A DNA stretch of 64,000 nucleotides, from contig NC_088810.1 of the NCBI RefSeq assembly GCF_011386835.1, positions 1,612,001 through 1,676,000 of the forward strand, in the 5' to 3' direction. The notes beneath the pieces were generated by a model. That model had not been told where the DNA came from and did no database searches. It worked only from the letters and a program-made list of their open reading frames with translations. Position numbers and translations under genes: made by a program. Each line of letters opens with the position of its first letter. The first letter of the stretch is position 1. The DNA comes from Chrysemys picta bellii. Its lineage: Eukaryota. Positions 33,801-56,009 of this stretch are shown in pieces.

Positions 33801-34739
33801 CTTCTATCTAGGGGCTGGGCTGGGAGTCCTGACTTGTGCCCTGGGGACGAAGTCCATATGGCCAAGACTATAAACAATGACGTCACTTCTTCCCACCCAC
33901 CCCCTTCTTTAACCCCTTGTATCCGCATCTGGGGCGCTGAACTGCTCCCTGGGTTTCTAACCCTCTCCCACCTGGGCTGCCTGGCAGGGGCACATGTCCA
34001 GAGGAAAGGGCAGGCAGGTGAAGGGTTAATCTCAGCTGCTTCTTTGGCAAAGGGCAGAGACCAGCCCGACAGTCAAAGTCCTTGTGGACTGCGCCCGCCC
34101 TGCTCTAACCACTAGATCTCACTCCCCTCCCAGAGCCGGGGACAGAACCCAGGTGTCCTGGCTCCCAGCCCCCTCTGCTCTAATCCACCAGCCCCCGCTC
34201 CCCGGGGATAGAACCCAGGAGTCCTGGCTCCCAGCCCCCCTGCTCTAACCACTAGATCCCACTCCCCTCCCAGAGCTGGGGAGAGAACCCAGGTGTCCTG
34301 GCTCCCAGCCCCCCCTGCTCTAACCACTAGATCTCACTCCCCTCCCAGAGCCGGGGACAGAACCCAGGAGTCCTGGCTCCCAGCCCCCTCTGCTCTAATC
34401 CACCAACTCCCGCTCCCCTCCCAGAGCCGGGGAGAGAACCCAGGAGTCCTGGCTCCAACACCCTCTCCCCCCCGCTCTCTTTCCACTAGGTGATGCGGCC
34501 TCCCCTATAGTTGGTATTTGGAGGGTTAATAAGATGAACGGGAAATGAAACTACCAGGCCGGGAGCTGTCCTGCAGAATGGACCAATCAGGATAGGATGT
34601 GTATGGGGGATTGTGGCCTTCATTTGCATATTTAAAGGGGTCTTGATCTGTGGGTGTGGGCCCAGCGTTATACCCTCTTCCATGTGTTTGCTAATGTTCT
34701 TGGAAGACCCTTCAATAACAAACCAGTGCAACTAACAGG

Positions 34740-35270
34740 TTGCAGGGGGTAACTCTTTACTGTGTGTGAGTGTGTGTTTCCAAAGAGGCTGGCCTGTGAG
34801 TGCTTGTGTCTTGTTCTTGGTGCACCTGGGGTATGCCAGCGTGACTGTAGCCCAGAGTGGCTGTGTGTGTAAGTGTAACCCTGTGTGCATTGTGAGACAG
34901 AGGGGGGGACTCTGGGTATGTGTGTAACCCAGTGTGTGTTGAATTGTATATCTGTGTGTGTGTGTGCATGTGCCAGGGCTGCTGTGTGTATAATTGTATT
35001 CCAGGGAGTGTGTGCGTGTCTGTGAGAGGGACGTGTGTGTATATCTGGAACCCTGTGTGCAGTTATATCGCCGCGTGTACATGTGTGGCACTCCATATCT
35101 CTATGCAGGTGTCTCTCTGTGTGGGTGTTACACACACGAGGGAAGGGTATCCGCTTGTATTAACCTTCCCTAGTGGGTGTATCGGTTACCCTTCCCTAGT
35201 GTGTGTGTATTGGTGTGTATCTGTTTGTGTTCATCTTCCCTAGTGTGTGTTGTGTCTGTGTGGGTGTTAC
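34740..35270. repeat. (TG)-rich low-complexity tract upstream of ETHE1 copy A
   Basis: Interrupted tgtg runs plus repeated ccttccctagtg. Confidence 0.7.
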
Positions 35271-35451
35271 CCTTCCTCCCTAGTATGTCAGAGGCAGCTC
35301 TGTGTCCCCGGCCCCAGCTCCCCCCTATGTGCAGCTGTCCCTTTAAGGGCTCCGGGCTCCCTGTCCCCGCCCCCTCCCGTCCTCCCCAACCCCTGGCATT
35401 TAAAGGGTCCGTCCCCGCCGCGGGCACCAGCGCAGCCCCCGCGATCCCGGC

Positions 35452-38400
35452 ATGTGGCTGTCCCGGAGCTGCGCGGCCGCGGCCGCTGCCCGGCGGGCCC
35501 TGCCCCTGCGACCCTACTGCACCCGCCGCGCCCAGCGCCAGGGGCTGCTCTTCCGGCAGGTGAGCCGGGCCCGGACTCCTGGGTTCTCTCCCCGGCTCGG
35601 GGAGGGGAGTGGGGTCTAGGGGCTCAGAGCAGGGGGGGCTGGGAGTCAGGACTCCTGGGTTCTCGCCCCTGCTCTGGGAGGGGAGTGGGGGCTGGTGGTT
35701 AGAGCAGGGGGGGCTGGGAGCCAGGACTCCTGGGTTCTCTCCCCGGCTCGGGGAGGGGAGTGGGGGCTGGTGGTTAGAGCAGGGGGGGCTGGGAGCCAGG
35801 ACTCCTGGGTTCTCTCCCCGGCTCGGGGAGGGGAGTGGGGGCTGGTGGTTAGAGCAGGGGGGGCTGGGAGCCAGGACTCCTGGGTTCTCTCCCCGGCTCG
35901 GGGAGGGGAGTGGGGGCTGGTGGTTAGAGCAGGGGGGGCTGGGAGCCAGGACTCCTGGGTTCTCTCCCCGGCTCGGGGAGGGGAGTGGGGGCTGGTGGTT
36001 AGAGCAGGGGGGGCTGGGAGCCAGGACTCCTGGGTTCTCTCCCCGGCTCGGGGAGGGGAGTGGGGGCTGGTGGTTAGAGCAGGGGGGGCTGGGAGCCAGG
36101 ACTCCTGGGTTCTCTCCCCGGCTCTGGGAGGGGAGTGGCGGCTGGTGGTGAGAGCAGGGGGGCTGTGAGCCAGGACTCCTGGGTTCTCTCCCCAGAAGGA
36201 CATGCTCTGGCAGTCAGGAAAGTCCAGCCCTCCTTATTGCTGGTCTGATCTGATCCTGGTGCTGTAACTTCCCCGCCCTCCTACAGGACTTCTGGCTTCC
36301 TGTCCGCTCCCAGGCCAGCTGATCGCTGGTTTCCCATCCCAGGCCAGGCGGGTGGCAGGCCTGTCACCTGGCTGCCTTGGCATCGAGCCCTCAAACGGCA
36401 GCCCTTGGCGGGGAGCCTGGAGCTGGGAATGACTGATGGGGAAGGAGGGGCAGGAGGGATAGCACCCGAACCATGGGTAGAACCCAGGAGTCCTGGCTCC
36501 CTCCTCCCCCGCCGGTGCTCACTGGATCTCCCCTCCACAGCTCTTTGAGCCCGTGAGCTGCACCTACACCTACCTGCTCGCGGACCTGAAGACCAAGGAG
36601 GCGGTTCTGATCGACCCGGTTCTGGAGACGGCCAAGCGGGACGCGGAGCTGGTGAGGGAGCTGGGCCTCAACTTACTGTATGCAGGTGAGAGCAGCTCCC
36701 AGGGGGTCGGGATGGGGACAGTCTCGTTGTGGAAGGGAATGGGGTCACTCAGGGCCTTTCCCCTGTAGGGGGCACCGGCCCCGATCCGGCCCCAGAGCAG
36801 GGACTGGCTGGCTCGGCGGGTGGAGAACGGGGCCTTTCCCCTCTAGGGGGCACCAGCCCCGATCCAGCCCCAGAGCAGGGACTGACTGGCGCGGGGGATG
36901 GAGAACGGGGCCTTTCCCCTCTAGGGGCACTGGCCCCGATCCGGCCCCAGAGCAGGGACTGGCTGGCTTGGCAGGGCGGGAACAGGTCGGGTTCCCGTCT
37001 GTAAATCCCTGGTTCTGCTCCTCGCAGCCAACACCCACTGCCACGCCGACCACATCACGGGCACCGGGCTGCTGAAGAAGATGCTGCCCGGCTGCCACAG
37101 CGTGATCTCCCGGGACAGCGGGGCCTTGGCCGACATCCTCATCCGCGAGGGCCACGCCCTGGAATTCGGGGCCTTCGTAAGTCACCTGGGCACTGGGGCT
37201 GGGACCCCGGACTCCTGGGTTCTCTCCCGGCTCTGGGAGGGCTGGGGGAGGGGGGGGTGTCTCGTGATTAGAGCGTGTGAGTGAGGGGGAGGGGTGTATT
37301 GGGAGCTCAGACTCCTGGGTTTCTCCCCAGCCCTGGGAGCTGAGTGGGGTCAGAACAAGGGAGTTGTGAGCCAGGACTCCTGGGTTCTCTCCCCGGCTCT
37401 GGGAGGGGAGTGGGGTCTAGTGGGTCAGAGCAGGGTGGGTGGGGAGCCAGGACTCCTGGGTTCTCTCCCCGGCTCTGGGAGGGGAGTGGGGTCTAGTGGT
37501 TAGAACAGGGGGGATCCTGGGAGCCAGGATTCCTGGATCCCATGGAGGGTCATGTCGCTGACTCCCCCTGTCTGTAGGCCCTGGAAGCCCGCTCCACCCC
37601 CGGACACACGGACGGCTGCCTGACCTACGTGCTCAGGGACAGGACCATGGCCTTCACCGGGGACGCCCTGCTGATCCGGGGCTGCGGCCGCACCGACTTC
37701 CAGCAGGGTGAGGGCGAGCTGGGGTGGGGTGGGGGGTTTCTTGGAGGGGTAGTGAATGGTTACCCTGGGGACAGGAGGGTGCATCCCTTGGATATGATGG
37801 TGGCTGCCATGGCGATGGTGACAACCGCTGGGCATGACCTGGAAGTGCCATGGTGAGGTGTGTGTGTGTTTGGGGGGGTGTTATCTGTAGGACATGCATG
37901 GTGATTGCCATGGGGATGGAGGGAGCATCTCTGGGTTCACCTCCTAGTCGCCATCGCCCTGGGGAACATGGCTGCTGGTTGCCATGGTGACGGCAGTGGG
38001 TGCTGGGGCGATGATGGGGGTGCCATGCCAGGGAGCTTTGGCCAGGCAGTTGCAGGGGATGCTGGGGTACCATGCCAGGGGATTGGCTGCATCTCCCACT
38101 GTGTGGTAACCAGGCCCCACTTCTCTCCACCCCCCAGGCTCCCCGGAGACCCTGTACCGCTCCGTGCACGAGAAAATCTTCACGCTCCCCGGAGAGTGTC
38201 TGATCTACCCCGCCCACGACTACACGGGTGAGTCCGAGCGCGGCGCTAGGGGGCGCTGTGCTCCAGGGAGCTGGGTGGGGGCTCCCTCTGCTGGTGCTGT
38301 ATCTCACCCGCCCCCTGGCGCCCCCTGCAGGCCAGACGGTGTCGACAGTGGAGGAAGAGAGGACCCTGAACCCCCGACTGACCCAGAGCTGCGAGGTCTT

Positions 38401-38683
38401 TGTCCAGCTGATGAACAACTTGAACCTTCCTCAACCCCAACAAATTGGTGAGGCTGGGAGCCCGGACGCCTGGGTTCTCTCCTGAGGCTGGGAGGGGAGT
38501 GGGGGTCTAGTGGTTAGAGCGGGGGGGTGGGGAGGATAGGTTTTATCCCAGCTGAGGGCCGGCGTGGGGTGTAGCCGAGGCCGGGGCCCCATCGCTCTGA
38601 CTAACGTGTCTGTTTTTTCATCCTCTGCAGATTTTGCTGTCCCAGCGAACCTCAAGTGTGGGATACAGGATGCAGCAACTTAG
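35452..38683 (+). CDS. ETHE1: Persulfide dioxygenase ETHE1, mitochondrial (copy A), 7 exons, 263 aa
   Basis: Exons 35452-35559, 36541-36685, 37028-37176, 37578-37707, 38138-38227, 38331-38447, 38631-38683; open frame, GT-AG introns. Motifs [39 protein letters not shown] and NLKCG. Arg/Ala-rich presequence [29 protein letters not shown] at 35399; AATAAA at 39349. Confidence 0.97.
35570..36195 (+). repeat. 72-bp minisatellite, about 8.5 near-identical copies, ETHE1-A intron 1
   Basis: Unit gtggttagagcagggggggctgggagccaggactcctgggttctctccccggctcggggaggggagtgggggctg. Confidence 0.92.
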
Positions 38684-39401
38684 CCTCGCCCTCTTTCTCC
38701 AATGCCACGCCCCTCGTGTTAAGCCGCACCCACCTCATCATAGGCCACACCCTCTCATTGACCCTTATGATGATGGAAGGTCCTTTGGCCTGGGGCTGGC
38801 TGTCCCTGACTCTCACTTGGGTCCCCCCCCTTAAGCAAAATGTGGGGCCTCCCTCTTTGGGGTCCTGAGTGGGAGGGCGCATCCCTTAAGTGGGGAGGGG
38901 GTTAATGATCTTCAACCATGGCAGCTTCCCTTCCCCCGCTGCAAAGTCCCCATCAATTCCTCTGACCGCCCCCCAGTTTGGCGTTAGGGAGTTTGCACCT
39001 TCCTCTGCATTCACTGTGGGGTGGGAGCATCCCATGAGCCTCCCCAGGGGAGCAAAGCCCCCCCCCCCATTCCCTGAGCCTGGTGTGCAGACAGCGGGGA
39101 ACCCCGGCAGCCGGCATTGGGGTGTGAGAGAGGCCCCAGGCCCCTGTAGCCTGCATTTGAATGACAGGGTACCTGCTTCCTACCCACTCTGTTTGCACTA
39201 GCTGGACTGTCTCCGTCTCTGCTCCGCGGGGCGTCAGCACCTCCCGGCCTAGAGCTGGGAGCGGGGCTCCCACTCTGGGCAGGGAGCCCTGTCTGTGAAT
39301 GTGACTTAATCGTGGGTGGGGGGTTTGGAAATGAACCGCTGCCGAGAGAATAAAGTTGTGTTGGACCTATTGGAATCGAGTGTGCCTCCGAAGGCGGTTA
39401 C

Positions 39402-39416
39402 CCACCAGAGGGCGCT
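39402..39416 (+). promoter_or_regulatory. CTCF-like site downstream of the ETHE1-A poly(A) signal
   Basis: CCACCAGAGGGCGCT matches the CTCF core consensus. Confidence 0.55.
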
Positions 39417-40933
39417 GCTCCCTCACATTTCCCAGCCTGTTCCCTGGATTTGCTCTCCCCCCCATATAGCCCAGGGGGCCCAGACCCCCTCGCCTCCCGC
39501 CCCAGGAACAGCAGCAGGAGCCTGCCCGTGGTCTTGGCCCAGAGAAAGGGCAAGAGGGAAGGAGAATCGGCTTCCATCCCTTTCCCCGACTCTCCAGAGC
39601 TGAACTCGCCCCCCACCCTTCCTCTTGGCGTGATAGTTTCCTTTTCCTTTCCTTCCTCTCCAGGGAGGGGTAAGCCCTGGCCAGAGCCCCCACTGCTTGA
39701 AAAAGGGAACCCCCCACCCCTCAGTCTGTTCCCACCCACCCTGACCCCTGCAAACAGGCCCAGCCAGCCGGACACCACCCCAGAGCCAGGCGCAATGCTG
39801 GCGGGGCTCCGTCCCAGCTGGAGTGGGAAAGGTCTTTCTGCCTGGTGAACTCCATGGGGCTGGGATAGAGCCAGCCCCAGACACCCCCTCCAATAAGGGG
39901 TGCTGCCCCTTTAAGGCTGCAGCCCTGGCAGAAAGGAATTGTGGGAGATGTAGTCCCAGGGTTGATGGGTGTTGTAAGCTGGGCAGCGAGGCATGCTGGG
40001 AAGGAACCAGGCCTATAAAAGAGCTCCCTTCTCAGCTACCAAGAGGGGGGTCTGGGTAAATAAGGGGGGTGGACACCTTAGCCAGCCAGCAGCTGTGAGA
40101 CACTCCTTGGGCAATTGTGCACCATTGCGCATATGCAGAATTTGGGTCCCCCCCAGATTTTTTTTCTTTCCCTGCAGAATATGAGATTCGGCTGGGGAAG
40201 GAACGCGAGGGGCCATGCGCTCTTCCCCGGCAGCAGGCGTGCTGGGAGCAGCCGGGGGGATGTAAATCACCACCGGGGCTGGGCGTGCGTGCCAGACTGT
40301 CCCTCTCGCTCGCTCTTGCAGTGTGCCCGCTGCAGAGAAGCAGGCCCTTCTGCTGTGTCGGGTGCACTGCTGCGTCTGTGTCGGGGGGCTGCAGGGTGAT
40401 CCCCCCAACCTCTGTGCAGCCAGGGGCCTGTGCTCCCCATTGGGAGGCAGCCCCCATGTGCACCCCTTGTCCATGTCACTGCGCCTAACCTGCAGAGGCG
40501 TGGGGCTGACCCAAGCAGCTGTGGGGAAGCCATGGGGAGCCTTGGCCAGGGCTGCCATTTCAGAAGGGTGGGGGGCACCTATTTCCCCCCCCCCCCGAGT
40601 TCCTGTCCCTTTCTGCTCCTGGGGATCATCTGTGTCGTTACAGACAGACTTGCTGACAGGGATTTTGCAATAAATTACCAAAATAGTTGAAAGTGAGGGG
40701 ATGAGATGGGATTATTCTGACAAAATGCACAGTGGGTTACAACGTTGTCCGCAGAACTTTTTGGATTTTTGGCGCAGAATTCCCCCCGGAGTAGGGAGCC
40801 TGGCACCATCTCCCCGAGCTGCCCCAGCAGCGGTCTCTGCGGTTGCGTCCAGCCCTGGATCTCAAAGCAATTAACACAGGTTAATTGTGGACCCTGACAA
40901 ACCTTTCCATCCCTGGGGAAACCTTTCCAACCC

Positions 40934-42089: not shown

Positions 42090-44540
42090 GACTTCTTGAA
42101 AGTCTCTGTTAGGGATAAAAGGGGTAAAAACCAGGTGGGGGGCCATGGTAGGGGCGGCTCCAGACCAGCTAACCGGGAAGAAGAGGTGGAGGATGCTTTT
42201 CTTAAACAACTCTCACAATCATCCACAGCCCAGGACGTGGTGATGCCGGGGGATTTCAACCACCCAGGGATCGGTTGGGAAAATATCCCAGCCGGGCACA
42301 GATCTTGGAATGCAGTGGAGACAGCTTTGGCGAAAGCCGCGAGGGGGAGGCGGTTCTGGATTTGGTTGTGCCCCAAAGGGAGGCACTGGTTGAGACGCTG
42401 AAGGTGGAAGGCAGCTTGGGTGAAAGGGATCGGGAAATGACAGCGCTCGCGCTGCTAAGGAAACAGCACGGATCAGCCAATGGATGGGACAGGCCCGTTA
42501 CTCGGTGAGGAGGGAAAGCCAGGAACAGAAAACGAAGCGATGGCTGAAGTGTTAAATGCCTTTTTTGTTTCCGTTTTCATCAGCCGACTACCCTAGTGAA
42601 TGTCAGCGGACACGGGGCAGGACCCAAGGCTACAACAGGCAAAGAGCGAGTTAAGAATGACTTAGCTAAGTTCCATGTCTTCAAGTCGGCAGGGCCTGAT
42701 GCCGTCTCACACGACCGTCTCATACACAAACCAGAGAAATCCAGTGGTTGGAAAACCGCTCCCAGGGAGCAGTGATCAGTGGTTCGCAGTCAGGTTGGAA
42801 GGATCCCTTGAGTGGATCTGGATCCCTTGGAGGGATCTGTCCTGGGTCGGGTTCTGTTCAGTGATTTGGATAATGGCACGGAGAACGCACTCTTAAAGTC
42901 TGAGGACAATACCAAGCTGGGAGGGGTTGCAAGCTGTCACGGACTCCCAGCCCCCAGGCTCTCTCGGCTCCCTACGGCCCCTGGGACGAACCCCCCAGTG
43001 TGACAGCCCTTCTCGGGGTCACGATCTCTCATGGGGGTTAAGCCCTAGGCACCAGCGCCTCCTGGGACCGCACCTCTCTGAGCCCCCAGCAGCCTGGCTC
43101 TGCCGTGGGCCCCCTCAGGGAGTCCCCTCGCTCTGGCCCCCGGGGCCCCCACCCCCAGAGGGAGGAACGCCCCCCGATCTCTAGCTGCAGTGACTACCAG
43201 CATCACACAGGAGGTTTATTGAGCATCTGGACCCAGCCCAGGCAGTTCTCAGGGCCCTCGGGCCTGGCCAGTCTCAGCCCCGGCCAGTTGGGTCTGTCCA
43301 GTCCCCATGGGTCCGGCTGCTCCTTGTCCCCAGCCCAGCCCCACCCAGCCCCCTCCTTCCAGCCCAGCCCCCTAAATCCCCTCCCCCACCTGCCCCTCCT
43401 CCGCCCTTTGTCTTCGGTCCCAGGTGAATAGGCTGCTGGTCCCCTCTCTTCTGTCCTTTGTTCTCCCCAGTCTGGTCAGGTCCCCGGGCCCCTCTCTCCT
43501 CAGCCCAGTGGCTCCCCACTGGCCAGAACCGGCTGGCTCCCAATCTCCAGGCTGGTGTCTGGGGTCCCGGCTGCAAGGCAAGGTCACACCTGGTCCCCTG
43601 CAACCACAAACCCCCTCCTACCCCCGTGTTATGTATGCAGCACAGAGGGAAACTGAGGCACACACCATGTTCATGCAAAACACTAAGAAAACCCCCCACT
43701 TCATCACACTAGTGCTTTGGAGGACAGGAGTAAGATTCAAACTGAACTGGACAAACTGGAGAAATGGTCTGATGTAAATAGGATGAAATTCAATCAGGAC
43801 AAATGCAAAGTGCTTCACTTCGGAAGGAACAATCAGTTGCACACACACAGAATGGGAAATGGCCGCCTAGGAAGGAGAACTGTGGAACGGGAGCTGGGCT
43901 CAGAGTGGATCACAAGCTAAAAGTGAGTCACCAGTGCGATGATGTGGCAAAACCAGAGGCCGTTCTTCTGGGATGTCTCAGCAGGAGTGTTGTAAGCAAA
44001 GCAAGACACCAGAAGTGATTCTTCAGCTCTACTCCGCGCTGATGACGTCTCACCTGGAGTCTCGCGTCCGGTTCTGGGCGCCGCACGCGGGGAAAGATGT
44101 GGGCAAATCGGAGAGAGTCCAGGGAAGCGCAACAAAAACGATTAACGGTCTAGAAACCATGGCCTAGGAGGGCAGATTGAAATTAGTCGGGAGAAGAGAA
44201 GACGGAGGCAGGGGGACGACATAACAGTCTTTAAGTACAAGGTTACGAGGAGGGTGACGGATGGTTCTTGTGCACTGCGGCCAGGACAAGGAGCAATGGG
44301 CTTGAACGTCAGCAAGGGAGGTTTAGGTTTAGGTTGGACGTTAGGAAAAACTTCCTACCTGTCAGGGTGGTGAAGCACTGGGGTAAATCGCCCAGGGAGG
44401 TTGTGGAATCGCCATCACTGGAGGTTTTGAAGAACAGGTGGGACAAACCCCGGCCGGGGGTAATACCTAGCCCTGCCTCGGTGCAGGGGACTGGCCTGGA
44501 CGGCCGAGCAAGGTCCCTTCCAGGCTGACATGTCTATGAG
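42090..44540 (+). mobile_element. Degenerate CR1 LINE (endonuclease, RT fragments and 3' end), interrupted by an LTR-like insert
   Basis: DAFLKQL...GDFNHP, LDLVV, GSVLGRVLFSDLDNG...DNTKLGG, QTELDKLEKWSDVNRMKFNQDKCKVLHFG, RTRSNGL...[10 protein letters not shown]. Confidence 0.9.
42935..43708 (-). mobile_element. Probable solo LTR inserted in the CR1
   Basis: TGTCA...TCACA termini; the CR1 sequence ggttgcaag / tgctttggaggacagg resumes on either side; antisense AATAAA at ~43214. Confidence 0.6.
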
Positions 44541-44899: not shown

Positions 44900-45990
44900 A
44901 AATTAACTGCCCCCCCCCCCCCCGGGGGGTGGGAGCCAACCCATTCCCTGGCTTGCAATGACCAGCCAAGGCAAGGAAACAGACTCAAAGACGGGAAAGG
45001 ACCTGCCTGAACTGGAGATAGAACCCAGGAATCCTGGCTCCGCCCCCACCCCCTTTCCCTTCCCTTCCCAGAGCCAGGGAGAGAACCCAGGAGTCCGGGC
45101 TCCCCCCACCCCAACCCATTACCTCTCCCCAGCCAACTCAGCTGCTTCCTGAGAAGCAAAAACCCCCCCAGGATTAGGACGCAGGGGAGCCTAGAGAGCT
45201 GGCGCGGCTGGAGGGGCCCCTGGCCGGCCGGTGACCAGGGCTTCCTTAGCAAGACAGGGGGACTCTGTTGGGGGACAGGGGGTCCCCGAGAAGGCAGGTG
45301 AGAGAATCCTGCTTCCCACGACTGTCACTACCCAAAAGGGCTGACAGGGCAGAGTTCAGTGGTACTACCCCGCAAGGGAAAAGGAGGGAGCCTGGACACC
45401 TGGGTTCTCTCTCTGGCTCTGGGAGGGGAGAGGGGTTAGAGCAGGGGGGGCTGGGAGCCAGGACGCCTGGGTTCTCTCTCTGGCTCTGGGAGGGGAGAGG
45501 GGTTAGAGCAGGGGGCTGGGAGCCAGGACGCCTGGGTTCTCTCTCTGGCTCTGAGGGGGGAGAGGAGTCAGAGCAGGGGGGGGCTGGGAGCCAGTATGCC
45601 TGGTTCTCTCTCTGGCTCTGAGGGGGGAGAGGGGTCAGAGCAGGGGAGCTGGGAACCAGGACGCCTGGGGTTCTCTCTCTGGCTCTGGGAGGGGAGAGGG
45701 GTCAGAGCAGGGGGCGCTGGGAGCCAGGACGCCTGGGTTCTCTCTCTGGCTCTGGGAGGGGAGAGCGGTCAGAGCAGGGGGGGCTGGGAGCCAGGACGCC
45801 TGGGTTCTCTAGACATGAGCGCATACCATGCAGTTCCATTGCCTGTTGGGTCCTCGGGGGCCAGTCCCGGGGGCGTGACGTGATCTTTCCCTCCTGGCTG
45901 CGCCATGGTTACCAAGCCCGTGAGGGCACCGCGGGGGGTGGGGGGATGATTTTGGGCCCCTGGGAGCAGGCTGGGAATGTGCCGTGGCAA

Positions 45991-46114: not shown

Positions 46115-46274
46115 CATGGCAATAACACGGCTGGGAGCAGGGTTGGGGAGACAGAGCCCTTGGGTGTGAAGAGATGGTAACGCCTGCTGGGCTGTCAGAG
46201 GTGATTATATCTGGGAGGGAGAGATTTGCCAACTGTCAACTGATGCCAGGGTGGAGGGGGGAGGGAAAGGAATA

Positions 46275-47040
46275 GAACCCAGGAGTCCTGGCTCCCAGCC
46301 CCCTGCTCTAACCACTAGACCCCACTCCCCTCCCAGAGCCAGGGAGAGAACCCAGGAGTCCTGGCTCCCAGCCCCCTGCTCTAACCACTAGACCCCACTC
46401 CCCTCCCAGAGCCAGGGAGAGAACCCAGGAGTCCTGGCTCCCAGCACCCTGCTCTAACCACTAGACCCCACTCCTCTCCCAGAGCCAGGGAGAGAACCCA
46501 GGAGTCCTGGCTCCCAGCCCCCTGCTCTAACCACTAGACCCCACTCCCCTCCCAGAGCCAGGGAGAGAACCCAGGAGTCCTGGCTCCCAGCGCCCCGCTC
46601 TAACCACTAGACCCCACTCCCCTCCCAGAGCCATGGAGAGAACCCAGGAGTCCTGGCTCCCAGCGCCCCGCTCTAACCACTAGACCCCACTCCTCTCCCA
46701 GAGCCATGGAGAGAACCCAGGAGTCCTGGCTCCCAGCGCCCCGCTCTAACCACTAGACCCCACTCCTCTCCCAGAGCCATGGAGAGAACCCAGGAGTCCT
46801 GGCTCCCAGCGCCCCGCTCTAACCACTAGACCCCACTCCTCTCCCAGAGCCATGGAGAGAACCCAGGAGTCCTGGCTCCCAGCGCCCCGCTCTAACCACT
46901 AGACCCCACTCCTCTCCCAGAGCCATGGAGAGAACCCAGGAGTCCTGGCTCCCAGCGCCCTGCTCTAACCACTAGACCCCATTCCTCTCCCAGAGCCAGG
47001 GAGAGAACCCAGGAGTCCTGGCTCCCAGCCCCGCCCCCCA
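46275..47040 (-). repeat. ~69-bp minisatellite, about 11 copies, immediately upstream of ETHE1-B
   Basis: Unit agaacccaggagtcctggctcccagcgccccgctctaaccactagaccccactcctctcccagagccatggag. Confidence 0.92.
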
Positions 47041-47181
47041 GCTCCAACCACTTTAAGATCCAACCTGCCCTGTCCTCCCTGCCTCCGCCTCCTTCCTCCC
47101 TCCCGCCCCCACCGTCTGGCATTTAAAGGACTCACCCCCCGGCCTGGCACCAGTGCATCCAGCCTCCTGCGCGCCCCGGCC

Positions 47182-50100
47182 ATGACCCTGAGACCGTACT
47201 GCACCTGCCGTGGCCAGGGCGAGGGGCTGCTCTTCCGGCAGGTGAGCTCCGGGCACGGGGGCTGCGAGCCAGGACTCCTGGGTTCTATCCCTGGTTCTGG
47301 GAGGGGAGTGGGATCTAGTGGTTAGAGCAGAGAGGGCTGGGAGCCAGGACACCTGGATTATCTCCCTGGCTCGGGGGGGGGGGGAGTGGGGTTTAGGGGT
47401 TAGAGTGAGGCGGGTTGGGAGCCCGGACGCCTGGGTTCTATCCCTGGCTCTGGGAGGAGAGAGGGGTCTGGTGGTGGAAGATGGGTCCCGGACTCCTGAG
47501 TTTTCTCTGTGGGGCTTTGGGAGGGGAGTGGGGTCTAGTGGTGAGAGCTGGGTTCTCTAGACATGAGCGCATACCGTGCAGTTCCATTGCTTGTTGGGTC
47601 CCCAGGGGCCTGACGCGATTATTCCCTCCTGGCTGCGCCGTGGTTACCTGGCCTGTGTGGGCTCCAGGGGGATGCTGGGAGCCCAATAACACAGCTGGGT
47701 GCCGAGCTGGGACGATGGAGCTGCTGGGTAACTCCTGCTGGGCTGATTATATCTGGGAGGGGGAGATTTACCAACCGGCAACTGATGCCATGATGGAGAG
47801 GGGGAGGGAAAGGAATAGAACCCAGGCGTCCTGGCTCCCAGCCTCCCCCCCACTCCAACTACTAGACCCCACTCCCCGCCAGTGCTCACTGGATCTCCCC
47901 TCCACAGCTCTTTGAGCCCGTGAGCTGCACCTACACCTACCTGCTCGCGGACCTGAAGACCAAGGAGGCGGTTCTGATCGACCCGGTTCTGGAGACGGCC
48001 AAGCGGGACGCGGAGCTGGTGAGGGAGCTGGGCCTCAACTTACTGTATGCAGGTGAGAGCAGCTCCCAGGGGGTCTGGATGGGGACAGTCTCGTTGTGGA
48101 AGGGAATGGGGTCAGGGCCTTTCCCCTGTAGGGGGCACAGGCCCCGATCCGGCCCCAGGGCAGGGACTGGCTGGCTAGGCGGGTGGAGAACGGGGAACGG
48201 GGCCTTTCCCCTCTGGGGGGCACCGGCCCCGAATCGGCCCCAGAGCAGGGACTGGCTGGCGCGGGGAATGGGGAACGGGGCCTTTCCGCTCTAGGAGCAC
48301 CGGCCCCGATCCAGCCCCAGGGCAGGGTCTGGCTGACTCAGGGGATGGAGAATGGGGCCTTTCCCCTCTAGGAGCACCGGCCCCGATCCAGCCCCAGGGC
48401 AGGGACTGGCTGGCTCGGCAGGGCGGGAACAGGTCGGGTTCCCGTCTGTAAATCCCTGGTTCTGCTCCGCGCAGCCAACACCCACTGCCACGCCGACCAC
48501 ATCACGGGCACCGGGCTGCTGAAGAAGATGCTGCCCGGCTGCCGCAGCGTGATCTCCCGGGACAGTGGGGCCTTGGCCGACATCCTCATCCACGAGGGCC
48601 ACGCCCTGGAATTCGGGGCCTTCGTAAGTCACCTGGGCACTGGGGCTGGGAGCCCGGACTCCTGGGTTCTCTCCCCGGCTCTGGGAGGGCCGGGGGGGGG
48701 GTCTAGTGATTAGAGCGTGTTTGGCAGGGGAGGGGGCGCTGGGAGCCAGGACTCCTGGGAGGGCAGGGGGTCTAGTGGTTAGAGTGGTGGGGAGGTGGGG
48801 GGAAGGGGAAGTTGGGAGCCCGGACTCCTGGGTTTCTCCCCAGCACTGGGAGCTGAGTGGGGTCAGAACAGGGGAGTTCTCTCCCCGGCTCTGGGAGGGC
48901 AGGTGGGGGGTCTAATGATTAGAGCGTGTTTGGCGGGGGTGGGGGCGCTGAGAGCCAGGACTCCTGGGTCCCATGGAGGGTCATGTCGCTGGCTCCCCGT
49001 GTCTGCAGGCCCTGGAAGCCCGCTCCACCCCCGGACACACGGACGGCTGCCTGACCTACGTGCTCAGTGACAGGACCATGGCCTTCACCGGGGACGCCCT
49101 GCTGATCCGGGGCTGCGGCCGCACCGACTTCCAGCAGGGTGAGGGCGAGCTGGGGTGGGATGGGATGGGGGAGTATGTGTTACCGGGGGGAGGGGTAGTG
49201 AATGGTTACCGTGGAGACAAGATATGGGATATGATGGTGGCCGCCATGGCGATGGGGGACATCTCCAGGTCATGCCCAGCAGTTGCCACAGCGATGAGGA
49301 ACATGGCTGCTGGTTGCCAAGGCGATGGCAGGGTGTGTCTCTGGGGCTCAGCCAGTGGGTGCTGTGGGGATGGTGGGGGTGCCCTGCCAGGGGGTTCGGC
49401 CAGAGGGCGTTGGGGGTGCTGTGCTGGGGGTATGGCAAGAGGGAGCTGGGGTTCCCATGGGGCACTGGGGGGGATGGTGGGGGTGCCCTGCCAGGGGGTT
49501 CGGCCAGAGGGCGTTGGGGGTGCTGTGCTGGGGGGTATGGCAAGAGGGAGCTGGGGTTCCCATGGGGCACTGGAGGGGATGTCGGGGGTGCCATGCCAGG
49601 GGATTGGCTGTGTTCCCCACCCCGTGGTAACCAGGCCCCACTTCTCTCTGCCCCCCAGGCTCCCCGGAGACCCTGTACCGCTCCGTGCACGAGAAAATCT
49701 TCACGCTCCCCGGAGACTGTCTGATCTACCCCGCCCACGACTACACGGGTGAGTCCGAGCGCGGCGCTAGGGGGCGCTGTGCCGCGGGGGGCGGGGGGAG
49801 CTCTCCTGGGCAGGACGGGTGCAAGGATGTTTCGCGCCCTAGGCAAAACTTCCACCTTGCGCCCTCCCCCCTCCCCGAGCCCTCCGGCAGCTCCCTGCTC
49901 CCCCTGCCCTGAGGTGCCCCCCCCCGTGGGAGCTTCCCACCCCCCTCCACCCTGAGGCGCCCCCCCCGTGGCAGCTCCCCATCCCAGCTCACCTCTGCTC
50001 CGCCCCCTCCCCGAGCCCTGCGGCACCTCCCCACCCCCCTCTGCCCTGAGGCGCCCCCCCCCCCGCCCCGCAGCAGCTCCCCCCCACCCCAGGTCACCTC

Positions 50101-51626
50101 TGCTCCGTCCCCTCCCCGAGCCCTGCGTCAGCTCCCCAACCCCCCCTCCACCCTGAGGCACCCCCCCCCGCGGCAGCTCCCGCCCCCGCCCTGAGGCACC
50201 CCGCCTGTGGCAGCTCCCCACCCCCCACTCCACCCAGAGACGCCCCCCCGTGGCTGCTCCCTCCCCCCCGGGGAGCCGTGCGGCAGCTCCCCGCCTCCTC
50301 CCCGAACAGGCCGCCCTCGCTCTAATTCTCCTCCCCTCCCAGGCTCTCGGCGCCAATCAGCTGTTTGGCACCACAAGCCTGGGAGGGAGAGAAGCAGAGC
50401 GGGCGGCGCGCTCAGGGGAGGATGCGGAGCAGAGGTGAGCTGGGGCGGGGAGTTCCCCTGCGTGCCGCCCCCCCCCCCTACTTGCTGCAGGCGGCCCTCC
50501 CCACATCCCCTGCCCCAGCTCCCTCCGCCGAAATGCCGCCGACGACTGGGGTCGCTGCCGAAGAAAATGCCACCCCCCAAATGCTAGCGCCTTAGCCGAC
50601 CGTCTAGGTCGCCTAATGGGTTGCACCGGCCCTGCTCCTGGGGCAGTCAGGGCTGGCCCCGATGCCCCAGCCCGGCGCTAGGGGGCGCTGTGCTCCAGGG
50701 ACCCCCCCCCCCCCCACTGGTGCTGTATCTCACCCGCCCCCTGGCACCCCCTGCAGGCCAGACGGTGTCCACGGTGGAGGAAGAGAGGACCCTGAACCCC
50801 CGACTGACCCAGAGCTGTGAGGCCTTTGTCCAGCTGATGAACAACTTGAACCTGCCTCAGCCCAAGAAAATTGGTGAGGCTGGGAGCCCGGATGCCTGGG
50901 TTATCTCCCAGGGCTGGGAGGGAGGAGGGTTGGTGGGTTAGAGCAGGGGGGGCTGGGAGCCAGGATGCCTGGGTTCTCTCCTGGGGCTGGGAGGAAGGAG
51001 GGTTGGTGGGTTAGAGCAGGGGGGACTGGGAGCCCAGAGACCTGGGTTCTTTCTCTCCTGGGGCTGGGAGGGAGGAGGGTTGGTGGGTTAGAGCAGGGGG
51101 GGCTGGGAGCCAGGATGCCTGGGTTCTCTCCTGGGACTGGGAGGAAGGAGGGTTGGTGGGTTAGAGCAGGGGGGGCTGGGAGCCCAGAGACCTGGGTTCT
51201 CTCCTGGGGCTGGGAGGGAGGAGGGTTGGTGGGTTAGAGCAGCTGGGAGCCAGGAGTCCTGGGTTCTTTCCCTGGGCAAGGAGGGTTGGTGGGTTAGAGC
51301 AGCGGGGGACAGCGAGCCAGGACGCCTGGGTTCTCTCGCCAGCTCTGGGAGGGGAGTGGGGTCTGGTGGGTTACAGTGGGGGGGGGCTGGGAGCCAGGAC
51401 ACCTGGGTTCTCTCCTGGGCTGGAAGGGAGGAGAGTTGGTGTGTTAGAGCAGTGGGGGGCTGGGAGCCAGGACTCCTGGGTTCTGTTCCCAGCTGTGGGC
51501 CGTGGAAGGTGTAGACGAGGCCAGGACCCCTATCACTCTGTCTAACACTTGTCTCTTCTTCTGTCCTTTGCAGATATCGCTGTCCCGGCAAACCTGAAGT
51601 GCGGGATCCAGGATGTGGAGACTTAG
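47182..51626 (+). CDS. ETHE1: Persulfide dioxygenase ETHE1 paralog (copy B), 7 exons, 247 aa, truncated N-terminal presequence
   Basis: Exons 47182-47241, 47908-48052, 48475-48623, 49009-49138, 49659-49748, 50757-50873, 51574-51626; open frame, GT-AG introns, all metal-binding and substrate motifs retained. N-terminus [26 protein letters not shown] at 47122; AATAAA at 52363. Confidence 0.93.
49811..50634. mobile_element. hAT non-autonomous element in ETHE1-B intron 5
   Basis: TIRs CAGGACGGGTGCAA / TTGCACCGGCCCTG; perfect 8-bp TSD CTCCTGGG (49803-10 and 50635-42); absent from copy A. Confidence 0.88.
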
Positions 51627-52404
51627 CCCCACCCTCTTTACTCCAAGGCCACACCCCTCACAACAAGCCCCTCCCACCTCCACATAGGCCATGGCCTCTC
51701 ATTGACCCTTACTAGGATGGAAGGTCCTTTGGCCTGGGGGCTGGGGGGGGGGGCTGTCCCTGACTCTCACTCCAGTCCCCACCTTTAAAGGAAAGCTGGG
51801 ACCTCGGTGGGACTGTGCATCCATTAATGGGGGCAGTTAATGATCATCGACCGTTGCAGGTTCCCTTCCCCCCCCGCCAGCGCCCCCATTCCTCTGACAA
51901 CCCCAGTCTGGCATTAGGGAGTCTGCACCTTCCTCTGCATTGGCTGTCATGTGGGGGTGTCCTGCTGGCCTCCCCTGGGAAGCAAAGCCACCCCCCTCTT
52001 CTCTGAGCTTGGAGTGCGGATAGCAGGGGACCCCAGCCTGCGCTGAGGTCCGAGAGAGACCCTCAACCCCCCATGCCCTGTGTTTGAATAGTGGGGTGCC
52101 CTGTGGGAACCCCACTTGGTTCGGTTAGGTCCCTCCCTCACCCTGCAGCTGAATGGGGGGGAACCCCCACTCCCAGGGGCTCTGGGTTAGTGCTGTTTGC
52201 ACTAGCTAGACTTTCCCCATCTCTGCCCCCGGGTCTCGGGCGAGCCTGGCCCTGGACTCCCCGCTCCGTCGGGGGCCAGGGGAGGGGAAGGGGGCCCTGT
52301 CTGGGAGCGGGGCTGAACCTCAGCGGGGTTTGGAAACGAGCAGCTGCTGCCGCCGCCAAGAAAATAAAATTCTGTTGGACCCATTTGGACTTGATTTCGC
52401 TTCG

Positions 52405-53295
52405 CAAGGCAGGAGGCCGGGGTAGAGGGGCCCGTGGGGCACGGGCAGGGCGGGAGGCTGGGGTAGAGGGGCCCGGGCGGCTCGGGCAGGGCGGGAGGCC
52501 GGGGTAGAGGGGCCCGTTGGGCACGGGCAGGGCGGGAGGCCGGGGTAGAGGGGCCCGGGCGGCTCGGGCAGGGCGGGAGGCCGGGGTAGAGGGCCCGGGC
52601 GGCTCGGGCAGGGCGGGAGGCCGGGGTAGAGGGGCCCGTGGGGCCCGAGTGGCTCGGGCAGGGCGGGAGGCCGGGGTAGAGGGGCCCGGGCGGCCCGGGC
52701 AGGGCGGGAGGCCGGGGTAGAGGGGCCCGTGGGGCACGGGCAGGGCGGGAGGCCGGGGTAGAGGGGCCCGGGCGGCTCGGGCAGGGCGGGAGGCCGGGGT
52801 AGAGGGGCCCGTTGGGCACGGGCAGGGCGGGAGGCCGGGGTAGAGGGGCCCGGGCGGCCCGGGCAGGGCGGGAGGCCGGGGTAGAGGGGCCCGTTGGGCA
52901 CGGGCAGGGCGGGAGGCCGGGGTAGAGGGGCCCGGGCGGCCCGGGCAGGGCGGGAGGCCGGGGTAGAGGGGCCCGGGCGGCCCGGGCAGGGCGGGAGGCC
53001 GGGGTAGAGGGGCCCGTGGGGCACGGGCAGGGCGGGAGGCCGGGGTAGAGGGGCCCGGGCGGCTCGGGCAGGGCGGGAGGCCGGGGTAGAGGGGCCCGGG
53101 CGGCACGGGCAGGGCGGGAGGCCGGGGTAGAGGGGCCCGGGCGGCTCGGGCAGGGCGGGAGGCCGGGGTAGAGGGGCCCGGGCGGCTCGGGCAGGGCGGG
53201 AGGCCGGGGTAGAGGGGCCCGGGCGGCTCGGGCAGGGCGGGAGGCGGGGTAGAGGGGCCCGGGCGGCTCGGGCAGGGCGGGAGGCAGGGGTAGAG
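52405..53295 (+). repeat. 41-bp G-rich VNTR, about 21 copies
   Basis: Unit gggcagggcgggaggccggggtagaggggcccgggcggctc; gtagag recurs at 41-bp spacing (for example 52504 and 52545). Confidence 0.92.
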
Positions 53296-53363
53296 GGGCT
53301 GAGGTTGCAGGGCAGGACCCCAGGCTGGCTGGGGCCATGGGGCCAGCCTCTTACTGTAGTTTC

Positions 53364-53378
53364 CCACCAGGGGGCGCT
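53364..53378 (+). promoter_or_regulatory. CTCF-like site downstream of ETHE1-B
   Basis: CCACCAGGGGGCGCT; paralogous to 39402-39416. Confidence 0.55.
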
Positions 53379-56009
53379 GCTCCCTCACTCTTTCCCCAGC
53401 CTATTCTCCGGCTTTGCAGCTGGGGGGTCGTGGGTGCTCTCCTCACCCACGCCCGCAGGCCCCCTCGACTCCCCCCTAGGAACAGCCGTGGGCGCCTACA
53501 CGTGGCCTTGGCCCAAAGAACGGTGAGAGGGAAGGAAAATCGGCTTCCATCCCTCCCCGCACCCCACAGAGCCAAACTTTTCCCCCATCCTTCCTACTAG
53601 TTCTTCCCTCTTCCCTTCCCTCCTCTGCACAGCCACAGCATCCCGCTTCAAAAAGGGACCCCCACCCCTCGGTCTGTCCCCACCCACCCTGACCACCGCA
53701 AACAGGCCCAGCCAGCCGGACACCACCCCAGAGCCAGGCGCAATGCTGGCGGGGCTCCGTCCCAGCTGGAGTGGGAAAGGTCTTTCTGCCTGGTGAACTC
53801 CATGGGGCTGGGATAGAGCCAGCCCCAGACACCCCCTCCAATAAGGGGTGCTGCCCCTTTAAGGCTACAGCCCTGGCAGAAAGGAATTGTGGGTGATGTA
53901 GTCCCCAGGGTTGTAGGCTGGGCAGTGAGGCATGCTGGGAAGGGGGCAGGGCTATAAAAGGGCTCCTTTTGCTGTTACCTAGCAAGAGGAGGGGTTGTGC
54001 AGAGATTGAGGGAGTTTTCTGGGGCTCCCTGCCTTGCTCTGTGGGGTTCCTCAGGCAGCCAGGGGCTGAGAGGGCAGCACTAGTGACCCCAATGGCTCTG
54101 GCTTGGGGTGGGGAGACAGCTGATTGCAGGATTCTCTGCTGGTGCTTTCAGCCCAGGATCTCAAAGCAATTAATGGGGGTTAATTAGTTGAGCCTCATAA
54201 ACTCTTTTGCCCTGGGGAGTGGAGTCAGGATCCTCATTCCTGTTACACAGTGAGGGAAACTGAGGCATGGAGGTGGGACATCTGGGCAGGACAGCTGCCA
54301 CCATCCCCCACTGCTCAAACCCACTAGATCCCACTCCTCTCCCAGAGATAGGAGAGAACCCAGGAGTCCTCGCTCCCAGGCCCCACTACTCTAGCTACTA
54401 GACCCCACTCCCCTCCCAGAGCCAGGGAGAGAACCCAGAAGTCCTGTCTCCCAGCCTGCTACTGGCCTATGCTGACTGTTCCCACATGAACGCTGGAATC
54501 CCACAGGCCAATGGTGGATTTGAACAAGCCCCTGGGGCCCCCGCTCGTGGGCCTGTCAGCTAGGGAAGGGGTAGGGGGAAGACAGAGGTCTGGGGCCAAT
54601 TAACCCTTCAATGGCTGCCTGCCCTGCCCCCTCTGCTCCCCTGCGCTGACCTCCAGGGAGCAGCTCTCCTTATCAGGGCCTGTGAACTTTGCACCCAGCT
54701 CTGGGGTGTTTTGGGGCCGTTACTTAGGTCCAGCCGGTCTGGTGACAGAGCGGCTGGGGGATGTACGGAGAGAAGGGATAGCCCTGAACAAGGGGGGCTG
54801 GCTGGCTCTGGGGGGTGTGGGACCCTTCCCCTATAGGGGGGTTGGCTCCCATCTGTGCCCAAGGTGAGAACTGGCTGGTTCCAGGGGGGCAGAGCGTGGG
54901 GTCACGGGGCCTTTCGAATTAACCCTTTTTTTTTAAACTGTTTCTGGTTTTCAAACCCGACCTGCTGCAGCGCCCTGCCCGGCTCTCGTGGGAACAAAGT
55001 TCCCAAGGGAAACTCCCGCCAGGTAAATTTGGGTGTCAGCCGGCAGGACTCAGCCTGTCTCAATCTGCCAGGCCCGGGGGAGACAAACTGGTTTCTCTTA
55101 CGGATGTCGGACTCCTCCCTGGGAGCCTTGTCCCAGAGCCAAGGATGGAACCCAGGAGTCCTGGCTCCCAGCCCCCCCTGTAGTTAACTCCTGCCTAGCA
55201 GGGGAAGAGTCACCCCACTCCCTGGGGTGGAGTGATCAACCTGCTCCTAGGCAGGGAAACTGAGGCACAGACTGGTGAAAGAACCTGTCCAGTCTGAGTC
55301 CTGGCTCCCACCCCCCCGCTCTAACCACCAGCCCCCACTTGCCTCCCAGAGCCTCAGAGATGGATGGGTCTGAGTTCTTGGCCCAGGGGTGGTTACATAA
55401 GGGCAGAAAGTCCCAGCCCAGACCTCGTGCAGGGCTCTGGCTCTCGGTTTAACTGCTCAACTTCCCCTGCTTGTGACCCGCACCCGGCCTGCCTCGGAGG
55501 GGGGCTGGGAGCCAGGACGCCTGGGTTCTCTCCCCGGCTCTGGGAGGGGAACGGGGGCTGGTGGTTAGAGCAGGGGGCTGGGAACCAGGACTCCTGGGTT
55601 CTCTCCCTAGCTCTGGGAGGGGAGTGGGGGCTGGTGGTTAGAGCAGGGGGCTGGGAGCCGGGACGCCTGGGTTCTCTCCCCAGCTCTGGGAGGGGAGTGG
55701 GGGCTAGTGGTTAGAGGAGGGGGGCTGGGAGCCAGGACTCCTGGGTTCTCTCCCCGGCTCTGGGAGGGGAGTGGGGGCTGGTGGTTAGAGCAGAGGGGCT
55801 GGGAGCCAGGACTCCTGGGTTCTCTCCCTGGCTCTGGGAGGGGAGTGGGGGCTGGTGGTTAGAGCAGGGGGGCTGGGAGCCAGGACGCCTGGGTTCTCGG
55901 GCTGTGGCTGGCCCTGACGTGCCCTCCCCTCCCGGGCGCTGATGTCACAGGTGGTGTGTTTCCAAGCTCGGGCTGGAAAACGAGTTTGAGCAGCCGCTGC
56001 CACCCCCCC

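Follow-up and report, generated by a model that had tools for sequence, protein, structure and literature searches.

The genome of Chrysemys picta bellii carries two ETHE1 genes in tandem, and the downstream one (copy B) is probably best understood, from sequence comparison, as an old, turtle-wide paralogue which has had its presequence deleted and which would act outside mitochondria; we assign this reading a probability of about one half. ETHE1 is generally regarded as a mitochondrial matrix enzyme encoded by one gene, and its loss leads to ethylmalonic encephalopathy. Copy B is a genuine gene, intact and under purifying selection, and not a young or decaying duplicate; the deletion of most of its presequence goes back more than 200 million years. 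All positions refer to the window, i.e., the whole stretch of 64,000 nucleotides analysed.

Exon-by-exon reconstruction recovered both genes, each with seven exons and in the places where an earlier note on this DNA had reported two complete tandem ETHE1 genes (Table 1). The pair is located between XRCC1 and PHLDB3. All introns of copies A and B are bounded by GT..AG, neither frame contains an internal stop, and the intact splice sites and poly(A) signal previously ascribed to copy B are present; the AATAAA of copy A is at 39349. The coding sequences differ at 34 of 744 positions, which are spread unevenly over exons 1 (9/60), 2 (0/145), 3 (3/149), 4 (1/130), 5 (1/90), 6 (9/117) and 7 (11/53). 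Intron 5 measures 103 nt in copy A versus 1008 nt in copy B. That copy B might be a young duplicate or an assembly artefact was ruled out, given terminal exons that differ by 12–21%, unequal intron sizes, and orthologues of each copy in other turtle families. The tandem array upstream of copy B is homologous to positions 34096–34477 upstream of copy A.

Table 1. Features of the tandem ETHE1 locus and its surroundings in the window
Feature	Position	Strand	Remarks
TATA-like TTTAAA box of copy A	35399..35404	+	promoter alignment
Copy A, conventional ETHE1 with 31-aa basic leader	35452-38683	+	seven exons, 263 aa
Copy A exons	35452-35559, 36541-36685, 37028-37176, 37578-37707, 38138-38227, 38331-38447, 38631-38683	+	792 nt
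ORF fragment between copies A and B	43783..44268	+	tblastn
SINE-derived tandem array, 73-bp unit, 10.4 copies, 98% matches	46274..47029		adjoins copy B promoter, upstream
TATA-like TTTAAA box of copy B, within GGCATTTAAAGG motif	47122..47127	+	60 nt upstream of copy B ATG
Copy B ETHE1	47182-51626	+	seven exons, 744 nt, 247 aa
Copy B exon 1, coding part (20 codons)	47182..47241	+	new ATG at copy A codon 17 position
Copy B exon 2	47908..48052	+	identical to copy A exon 2
Copy B exon 3	48475..48623	+	HCHADH motif; His72 = counterpart of human iron ligand His79
Copy B exon 4	49009..49138	+	iron ligands His128, Asp147; GRTD motif
Copy B exon 5	49659..49748	+	PAHDY motif
Copy B exon 6, paralogue-specific	50757..50873	+	9/117 nt differ from copy A
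Copy B exon 7 and stop codon, paralogue-specific	51574..51626	+	C-terminus ...DVET vs ...DAAT in copy A
Copy B 3'UTR	51627..52385	+	AATAAA at 52363-52368

The copy B gene is already contained in public annotation and is not newly discovered; its protein is identical to RefSeq XP_065430096.1 (247 aa, named "mitochondrial"), a label that stems from automatic naming. Both genes are "mitochondrial" in public annotation, and several Ensembl and UniProt models join exons from both genes into one; turtle expression studies probably confuse copy A with copy B. Searches of the literature turned up no description of an ETHE1 duplicate in turtles, and a study of the anoxia transcriptome of the painted turtle does not mention ETHE1 in its supplements.

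Judged from its sequence, copy B comprises a complete persulfide dioxygenase domain. Searches with phmmer against PDB matched residues 16–244 to human ETHE1 (4CHL, E=1.5e-119) and also returned the Arabidopsis ETHE1-like protein 2GCU (E=2.8e-89), and PF00753 (MBL fold) is precomputed for the orthologues, in keeping with membership of the family. The HCHADH, PGHT, GDALL, GRTD and HDY motifs and the C-terminal Cys, all said earlier to be retained in copy B, were found. The iron triad His72, His128 and Asp147, within the motifs THCHADH, PGHTDG and TGDALL, corresponds to human His79, His135 and Asp154, while Tyr190, Cys240 and Arg156 correspond to Tyr197, Cys247 and Arg163 of the human substrate groove; the roles of the iron-ligand and key residues of human ETHE1 are as given in PMC4383860. 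Human ETHE1 deprived of its 20-residue targeting sequence still folds and binds iron (PMC4383860).

The N-terminus of copy B is altered. The TTTAAA box is unchanged in all seven of the aligned turtle copy A and copy B promoters, and its distance to the shared codon, which had been put at 41 nt less in copy B, was measured as 101 nt in copy A and 60 nt in copy B. The alignment agrees with the earlier proposal that the original ATG is gone and that the start of copy B now falls where copy A has codon 17 (L17M). As claimed, the stretch from the box to 47182 is free of ATG in all frames; in addition, the open frame, followed back to 46969, holds no in-frame ATG upstream of the start. The sole option for an upstream in-frame start would be a CTG at 47167, adding five residues, and it was discarded. 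The copy A leader does contain eight Arg and no acidic residue, and the described substitutions R25C, R29G and Q30E, with their loss of charge, are all present in copy B, accompanied by P18T and A27G. According to crude scores rather than a trained predictor, the 15-aa leader of copy B carries a net charge of +1 to +2 (Pelodiscus, +4) and has a maximum hydrophobic moment of 0.25–0.33 (0.46–0.52 in trionychians), as compared to +3 to +8 and about 0.43–0.65, on the same scores, for the leaders of copy A and all outgroups. Copy B does not have the N-terminal amphipathic, Arg-rich presequence of canonical matrix ETHE1. The central claim of the earlier note, a copy B without the mitochondrial presequence, is thus borne out, in that the Ala/Arg-rich amphipathic core was removed by a deletion common to all turtle copy B orthologues.

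Orthologues were sought using the open frame 48952–49749 as seed, limited to exon 4, and then using the protein ids so returned. Proteins of 247 aa with identical start were found in Chelonia, two Lepidochelys species, Caretta, Natator, Eretmochelys, Mauremys, Pelodiscus and Carettochelys; the truncated 247-aa form is present in at least ten cryptodiran turtles. All turtle copy Bs have in common the lost ATG, a 31-nt deletion, and the CTG-to-ATG change, and copy B of Chelonia, Carettochelys and the pleurodire Emydura shows the ATG, the deletion and the GT donor as in Chrysemys. Emydura copy B has the same first exon and N-terminus as the cryptodires, its leader being identical to that of several sea turtles. 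Exact look-ups for the Pelodiscus copy B and Emydura copy A loci returned no record. The tandem order copy A, copy B, PH-domain gene is the same in Carettochelys and Chelonia, and other tetrapods in the retrieved set have one ETHE1 gene. For exons 6–7, dS between copies A and B was 0.32–0.50, versus 0.8–1.7 towards Alligator. Since the founding changes are common to cryptodires and the pleurodire Emydura, comparison of these genes dates the duplication to the turtle stem and makes the paralogue older than crown turtles. The link to a hypoxia-tolerant lineage suggested in the earlier note is weakened accordingly: the paralogue predates crown turtles and occurs in sea turtles, softshells and tortoises alike.

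We propose that a segment of at least 6 kb, comprising promoter, seven exons and 3' flank, was tandemly duplicated between XRCC1 and PHLDB3 on the turtle stem. The downstream copy would then have lost the original ATG and, through the 31-nt deletion, the codons of an Ala/Arg-rich amphipathic helix; codon 17 would have changed from CTG to ATG, and two more leader Arg would have been replaced by Cys and Gly. The predicted product has just 15 residues ahead of a complete persulfide dioxygenase domain and is roughly equivalent to copy A after presequence cleavage, and both copies would have been retained under similar purifying selection. Because the core of the presequence is missing, we infer that most of the copy B protein is not imported and forms an extramitochondrial glutathione-persulfide dioxygenase, cytosolic and perhaps nuclear; a cytosolic localisation is plausible.

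Several observations count against such a location. Sulfite produced by a cytosolic enzyme would arise at a distance from the mitochondrial sulfite oxidase. The residual leader is still net positive, with two to four Arg, has retained the LRPY/H-C motif of copy A and, in most species, lacks acidic residues. Short presequences exist, and copy B could still be mitochondrial if its 15-residue basic leader and the first residues of the fold sufficed for import, in which case the two isozymes would differ in tissue, timing or regulation. The leader is also fairly conserved (dN/dS 0.16–0.65), as its identity between Emydura and several sea turtles illustrates, and the RefSeq name, though automatic, agrees with import. 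However, we consider continued import less likely, as the deleted part is exactly the Ala/Arg-rich amphipathic segment, the codons of which are absent from all copy B orthologues and retained by every other vertebrate ETHE1 in the set. Moreover, net charge and hydrophobic moment are, by the crude scores, well under those of all outgroups, and two further Arg were replaced early in the history of copy B and then fixed.

Copy B gives rise to spliced transcripts, at least as far as exons 4–7 are concerned. B-specific spliced contigs spanning exons 4–7 and the 3'UTR were present in four RNA-like runs from four studies and two organisms, so that the absence of copy B transcripts, which the earlier note had named as evidence against its proposal, does not apply. 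These contigs include the joints 49137>49658 and 49747>50756 flanking exon 5, and the exon 6–7 joint 50872>51573, which was seen in four of four runs (without mismatch in X1); a spliced, B-specific contig of run X2 has the copy B letter at 49068 in exon 4, and 3'UTR contigs cover 51573–51950 and continue past that end. A-type spliced contigs occurred in runs X1, X17 and X4, and the exon 2 splice joint was found in contigs unable to separate the paralogues. An exon 1–exon 2 joint was discarded as evidence for copy B, its 758-nt contig carrying copy A letters elsewhere. No contig over exon 1 (47182–47241) was listed in RNA-like runs, and words from 47129–47241 occurred in genome-sized runs only, a result that is uninformative either way because just nine words were sampled and the region is very rich in GC. 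Because exon 1 was unseen in RNA-like runs, the evidence for the copy B start site and first exon comes from the RefSeq model and from conservation.

The unseen exon 1, and annotation models that attach upstream exons to copy B in Mauremys, Pelodiscus, Eretmochelys and Natator, likewise count against an extramitochondrial copy B. They would fit a gene that is dual-localised or has alternative first exons, with a minor isoform bearing another N-terminus and the 247-aa form as one of several products. One such exon maps to the ORF fragment between copies A and B, which we take to be retrotransposon (LINE)-like; in tblastn, this fragment matched the upstream first exon of copy B in Mauremys isoforms X1/X2 and in 354-aa sea-turtle models. 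The other N-termini, however, are acid-rich or repeat-derived, unlike presequences, and they vary by species, whereas the 247-aa start is common to all; the exon 1 frame, donor site and TATA-like box are conserved as well. Such an origin of the product is therefore improbable.

The two ends of the gene and its core have had different histories. Exons 1, 6 and 7 cluster by paralogue, and exons 2–5, which are 99% identical between paralogues within a species, cluster by species. The A/B split was present in 100% of the bootstrap trees for exons 1+6+7, for which a painted-turtle A+B clade was rejected (AU test, p=8e-13); for exons 2–5, a copy B clade was rejected (AU test, p=1e-58). Recurrent gene conversion would have homogenised exons 2–5, the catalytic core, within each species, and exons 1, 6 and 7, lying outside the conversion, would have kept their paralogue identity. 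A survey of dN/dS, proposed in the earlier note, yielded 0.16–0.28 overall for copy B orthologues, the same as for copy A and indicative of purifying selection, and 0.10–0.31 in the unconverted exons 6–7. Frame disruptions in related species, which the note had also held to speak against it, occur in one lineage, Emydura macquarii, where exon 5 of copy B is disrupted; copy B can therefore be lost, and this too counts against the extramitochondrial reading, while at least ten cryptodirans are intact. With Emydura as the exception, copy B shows what is expected of a retained paralogue, namely transcription, a frame and splice sites that are intact in several species, and, away from the converted tracts, a dN/dS clearly under 1. 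That copy B is a redundant or decaying duplicate, apparently intact only through repair from copy A by gene conversion, would suit the near-identity of exons 2–5 and the Emydura lesion, but is very improbable in view of dN/dS values of 0.10–0.31 for the unconverted exons 1, 6 and 7 along copy B lineages, of a frame, splice sites and start codon that are sound in no fewer than ten species spread over crown Cryptodira, and of its spliced transcripts.

Copy B shares with vertebrate ETHE1 the seven exons, the XRCC1–PHLDB3 position, the iron triad and the equivalents of Tyr197 and Cys247, but lacks the Ala/Arg-rich amphipathic N-terminal segment, has a leader of 15 aa instead of about 20–35 aa, and is a second gene more than 200 My old, whereas other tetrapods in the retrieved set have one. 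It resembles the bacterial cytoplasmic persulfide dioxygenases (4YSB; rhodanese-fused BpPRF, 5VE3) in fold, active-site motifs and absence of a targeting peptide, and the N-terminus of the bacterial enzymes lies at the LLFRQLF-equivalent position, i.e., residue 16 of copy B. However, copy B is a recent derivative of an animal mitochondrial enzyme, without rhodanese fusion and with a conserved 15-aa N-terminal extension. The forms of HAGH (glyoxalase II) inside and outside mitochondria both come from one gene via alternative starts, whereas turtles would divide the two forms between two tandem genes. HAGH is a related glutathione-dependent MBL enzyme present in both locations, according to PMC9686547. 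Duplication followed by loss or change of the targeting signal of one copy is common in the human mitochondrial proteome, as described in PMC2790464, and copy B fits this pattern; in the turtles, however, gene conversion keeps the cores near-identical and divergence is confined to the terminal exons, and the relocalisation of copy B is itself putative.

The locus is a clean case of region-limited gene conversion, with a concerted core and diverging terminal exons over a very long time. Tentatively, an extramitochondrial persulfide dioxygenase, derived from a presequence-deleted tandem ETHE1 the core of which is kept in step by gene conversion, may have been present in turtles for over 200 million years. 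If so, turtles would have two compartments for glutathione persulfide clearance and hence for the control of persulfide signalling, which might have made it easier for some of their lineages to evolve, later on, an extreme tolerance of anoxia and reoxygenation. A vertebrate order that keeps a presequence-free and, as predicted, catalytically complete copy under purifying selection represents a natural experiment, which could reveal the role of persulfide dioxygenase outside mitochondria and the handling of cytosolic persulfide and sulfite.

Exon-by-exon reconstruction yielded two complete ETHE1 genes in tandem, copy A being the conventional gene and copy B the one with the shortened leader, with GT..AG boundaries at all introns, no internal stop codons and an AATAAA signal for each, as the earlier note had read them. 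The copy B protein is identical letter for letter to XP_065430096.1 (RefSeq, Chrysemys picta bellii); a 247-aa model with the same start codon is thus already public, under the name "mitochondrial". Homology between the A and B units spans at least the extent listed in the table, hence the duplicated segment took in promoter and 3' flank. The stretch 3' of copy B is colinear with a Chelonia segment bearing a PH-domain gene, which we take to be PHLDB3. The XRCC1-ETHE1 neighbourhood is also seen in Alligator and has been described for mammals (PMC6337849).

Features of the ETHE1 region in the window
Feature	Position	Strand	Remarks
XRCC1	~14997-24400	+	upstream neighbour of the ETHE1 pair
A/B homology	34096-40050 (A), 46270-53990 (B)		minimum extent
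GGCATTTAAAGG motif	35399-35410 (A), 47122-47133 (B)		also in other turtle loci L001, L002, L003, L004
Copy A	35452-38683		seven exons, 792 nt, 263 aa
Copy B	47182-51626		seven exons, 744 nt, 247 aa
Intron 5	38228-38330 (A), 49749-50756 (B)		103 nt (A), 1008 nt (B)
105-bp repeat	49977-50169		in copy B intron 5
AATAAA	39349 (A), 52363 (B)
ORF fragment	43783-44268		between the ETHE1 genes
Tandem arrays	35569-36193, 45386-45810, 46274-47029, 50878-51484		67-78-bp unit
Minisatellite	52404-53000		41-bp unit, 14.4 copies, 89% matches

Intron 5 is longer in copy B, the surplus sequence being C-rich and containing the 105-bp repeat. GGGAGCCAGGACTCCTGGGTTCT, the common turtle SINE core, forms part of the unit of the very regular tandem arrays. 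An array of 10.4 copies (98% matches) lies directly 5' of the copy B promoter, another of 8.3 copies (96% matches) inside copy A intron 1, and the GC-rich minisatellite begins just 3' of the copy B poly(A) signal.

The distance from the TTTAAA box is 101 nt to codon 17 of copy A and 60 nt to the ATG of copy B, a difference of 41 nt. Between this box and 47182 no ATG occurs in any frame, nor is there an in-frame ATG upstream of the start in the open frame followed back to 46969. Comparison of the leaders (copy A to copy B) gives L17M, P18T, R25C, A27G, R29G and Q30E; the shorter spacing, the lack of another ATG, and the start at codon 17 with R25C, R29G and Q30E had all been described previously and stand. 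In an alignment of seven turtle promoter and exon 1 sequences comprising both paralogues, GGCATTTAAAGG was invariant (7/7), which suggests a conserved core promoter element common to copies A and B.

Orthologues were sought with the open frame spanning copy B exon 4, limited to that exon, then with the returned protein, and among the members of its cluster. Nine other turtle species (Chelonia, Lepidochelys olivacea, L. kempii, Caretta, Natator, Eretmochelys, Mauremys, Pelodiscus, Carettochelys) have annotated 247-aa proteins that start with the consensus MTLRPHCTCRAQGQG, followed by LLFRQ, and end in ...DVET; the copy B N-terminus also occurs in the pleurodire Emydura. A copy A-type protein, mostly of 263 aa and ending in ...DAAT, is present as well in every species with the copy B form, and the order of the tandem genes, followed by the PH-domain gene, is the same in Carettochelys and Chelonia. 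All copy B orthologues in the alignment of seven promoter/exon 1 regions share the loss of the old ATG, the CTG-to-ATG change and a 31-nt deletion that takes out codons of the Ala/Arg-rich segment. Among the full-length vertebrate models retrieved, the short-leader form was confined to turtles, and Alligator, ostrich, crane, kiwi and squamates have one ETHE1 gene each among the best 120 matches listed. Judged by sequence comparison, copy B is an old paralogue found across turtles.

Mauremys mutica has two nearly identical copy B-type sets of 247 aa and 273 aa (proteins P0150, P0151, P0006, P0152) with differing accessions on a single chromosome-scale record; either copy B was duplicated once more in Mauremys, or a stretch of this assembly is doubled. 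In Ensembl/UniProt models of Chrysemys and Gopherus (P0016, P0154, P0155, P0153), copy A exon 1 is fused to downstream exons of copy B type, or introns are read through. An extra PL repeat lengthens the leader of the Chrysemys models by four residues relative to copy A in the window, which suggests that the repeat length differs from one assembly or individual to another.

Per-region distances and ML trees grouped exon 1 and exons 6-7 by paralogue, and exons 2-5 by species. The A|B split of the terminal exons was recovered in 100% of bootstrap trees, a painted-turtle A+B clade being rejected (AU test, p=8e-13); for exons 2-5, a copy B clade was rejected (AU test, p=1e-58), and here the two copies differ by 1.0% (Chrysemys), 1.2% (Chelonia) and 4.5% (Carettochelys). 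This pattern reflects gene conversion restricted to the catalytic core, with diverging terminal exons. In exons 6-7, copies A and B show a synonymous divergence of 0.32-0.50, which resembles that of the deepest turtle orthologue pairs and lies far below that to Alligator (0.8-1.7); the duplication is therefore placed on the stem lineage of turtles or at the crown's base. The dN/dS of copy B orthologues (Nei-Gojobori) is 0.16-0.28 for the whole CDS and 0.10-0.31 for exons 6-7, where conversion is unable to explain the conservation; copy A shows the same range. The 20-codon leader, with very few sites, gave 0.16-0.65. Disruption of the kind considered in the earlier note occurs in one exon of one species: exon 5 of Emydura macquarii copy B (L003:11800-11960) lacks both the AG acceptor and the GT donor and bears a 1-nt deletion as well as several indels. 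The other six exons (1-4, 6 and 7) are still open, and the RefSeq model is a 196-aa read-through product only. Unless that assembly is wrong there, the broken exon indicates loss of copy B, completed or under way, in one lineage or more.

Four small RNA-like runs, from four studies and two organisms, provided contigs for comparison with 46600-51950; the contigs omit each predicted intron at GT..AG boundaries and thus come from spliced RNA. In record 13 of run X2, exons 4-5-6-7 are linked to one another and to the 3'UTR, with the copy B letter at each of 49068, 50818 and 50823, and a B-specific exon 6-exon 7 joint with 3'UTR occurs in 4/4 runs, in X1 without mismatch over 140 nt. Transcription and correct splicing are thus established for the 3' half of copy B; expression is documented for exons 4-7, and exon 1 is covered by no piece among those listed from these runs. 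Nine words sampled from 47129-47241, a very GC-rich stretch, were found in genome-sized runs only. A 758-nt contig of X1 and X17 was rejected as evidence for copy B, as it has copy A letters at 48566, 48592, 49068, 50818 and 50823 and is a copy A transcript matching near-identical copy B exons.

Residues 16-244 of copy B align with human ETHE1 (structure 4CHL; E=1.5e-119). The iron ligands His79, His135 and Asp154 (human numbering) are kept, as are His81, Asp83, His84, His195, Arg163, Tyr197 and Cys247 (residue roles from PMC4383860), in agreement with the motifs recognized before. Since human ETHE1 made without the targeting sequence of 20 residues folds and binds iron (PMC4383860), and bacterial homologues start exactly where the turtle ETHE1 fold starts, a leaderless copy B protein should, by analogy, be an active enzyme.

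The segment deleted in copy B is exactly the Ala/Arg-rich stretch that all other vertebrate ETHE1 sequences in the comparison have kept. By a crude score, the 15-aa copy B leader has a net charge of +1 to +2 (Pelodiscus +4); its best hydrophobic moment over 11 residues is 0.25-0.33, or 0.46-0.52 in the two trionychians. Copy A and all outgroups have +3 to +8 and about 0.43-0.65. To an extramitochondrial location of copy B, as put forward in the earlier note, we assign a probability of about one in two; if the R-x-Y|C processing site proposed there for copy A is real, copy B would equal processed copy A plus six residues. A still-mitochondrial isozyme, which we consider rather unlikely, would fit a leader that is still basic, fairly conserved, devoid of acidic residues in most species and in possession of the LRPY/H-C motif, but the deletion and the lowered charge and moment argue against it. 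Dual or alternative-exon forms are improbable: some annotation models of other turtles do give copy B differing first exons, in some Mauremys, Eretmochelys and Natator models the positionally conserved ORF fragment, which by its look is presumably LINE-like, but these N-termini vary between species and bear no likeness to presequences.

No paper on a turtle ETHE1 duplicate, or on a vertebrate ETHE1 without presequence, was found in the literature; the gene itself is in RefSeq. Duplicated mitochondrial proteins are known to relocalise (PMC2790464), and glyoxalase II, a related MBL enzyme, is known in both compartments (PMC9686547). The suggested tie to hypoxia tolerance is not upheld: copy B appears to be older than crown turtles, and marine, softshell and terrestrial lineages all retain it.
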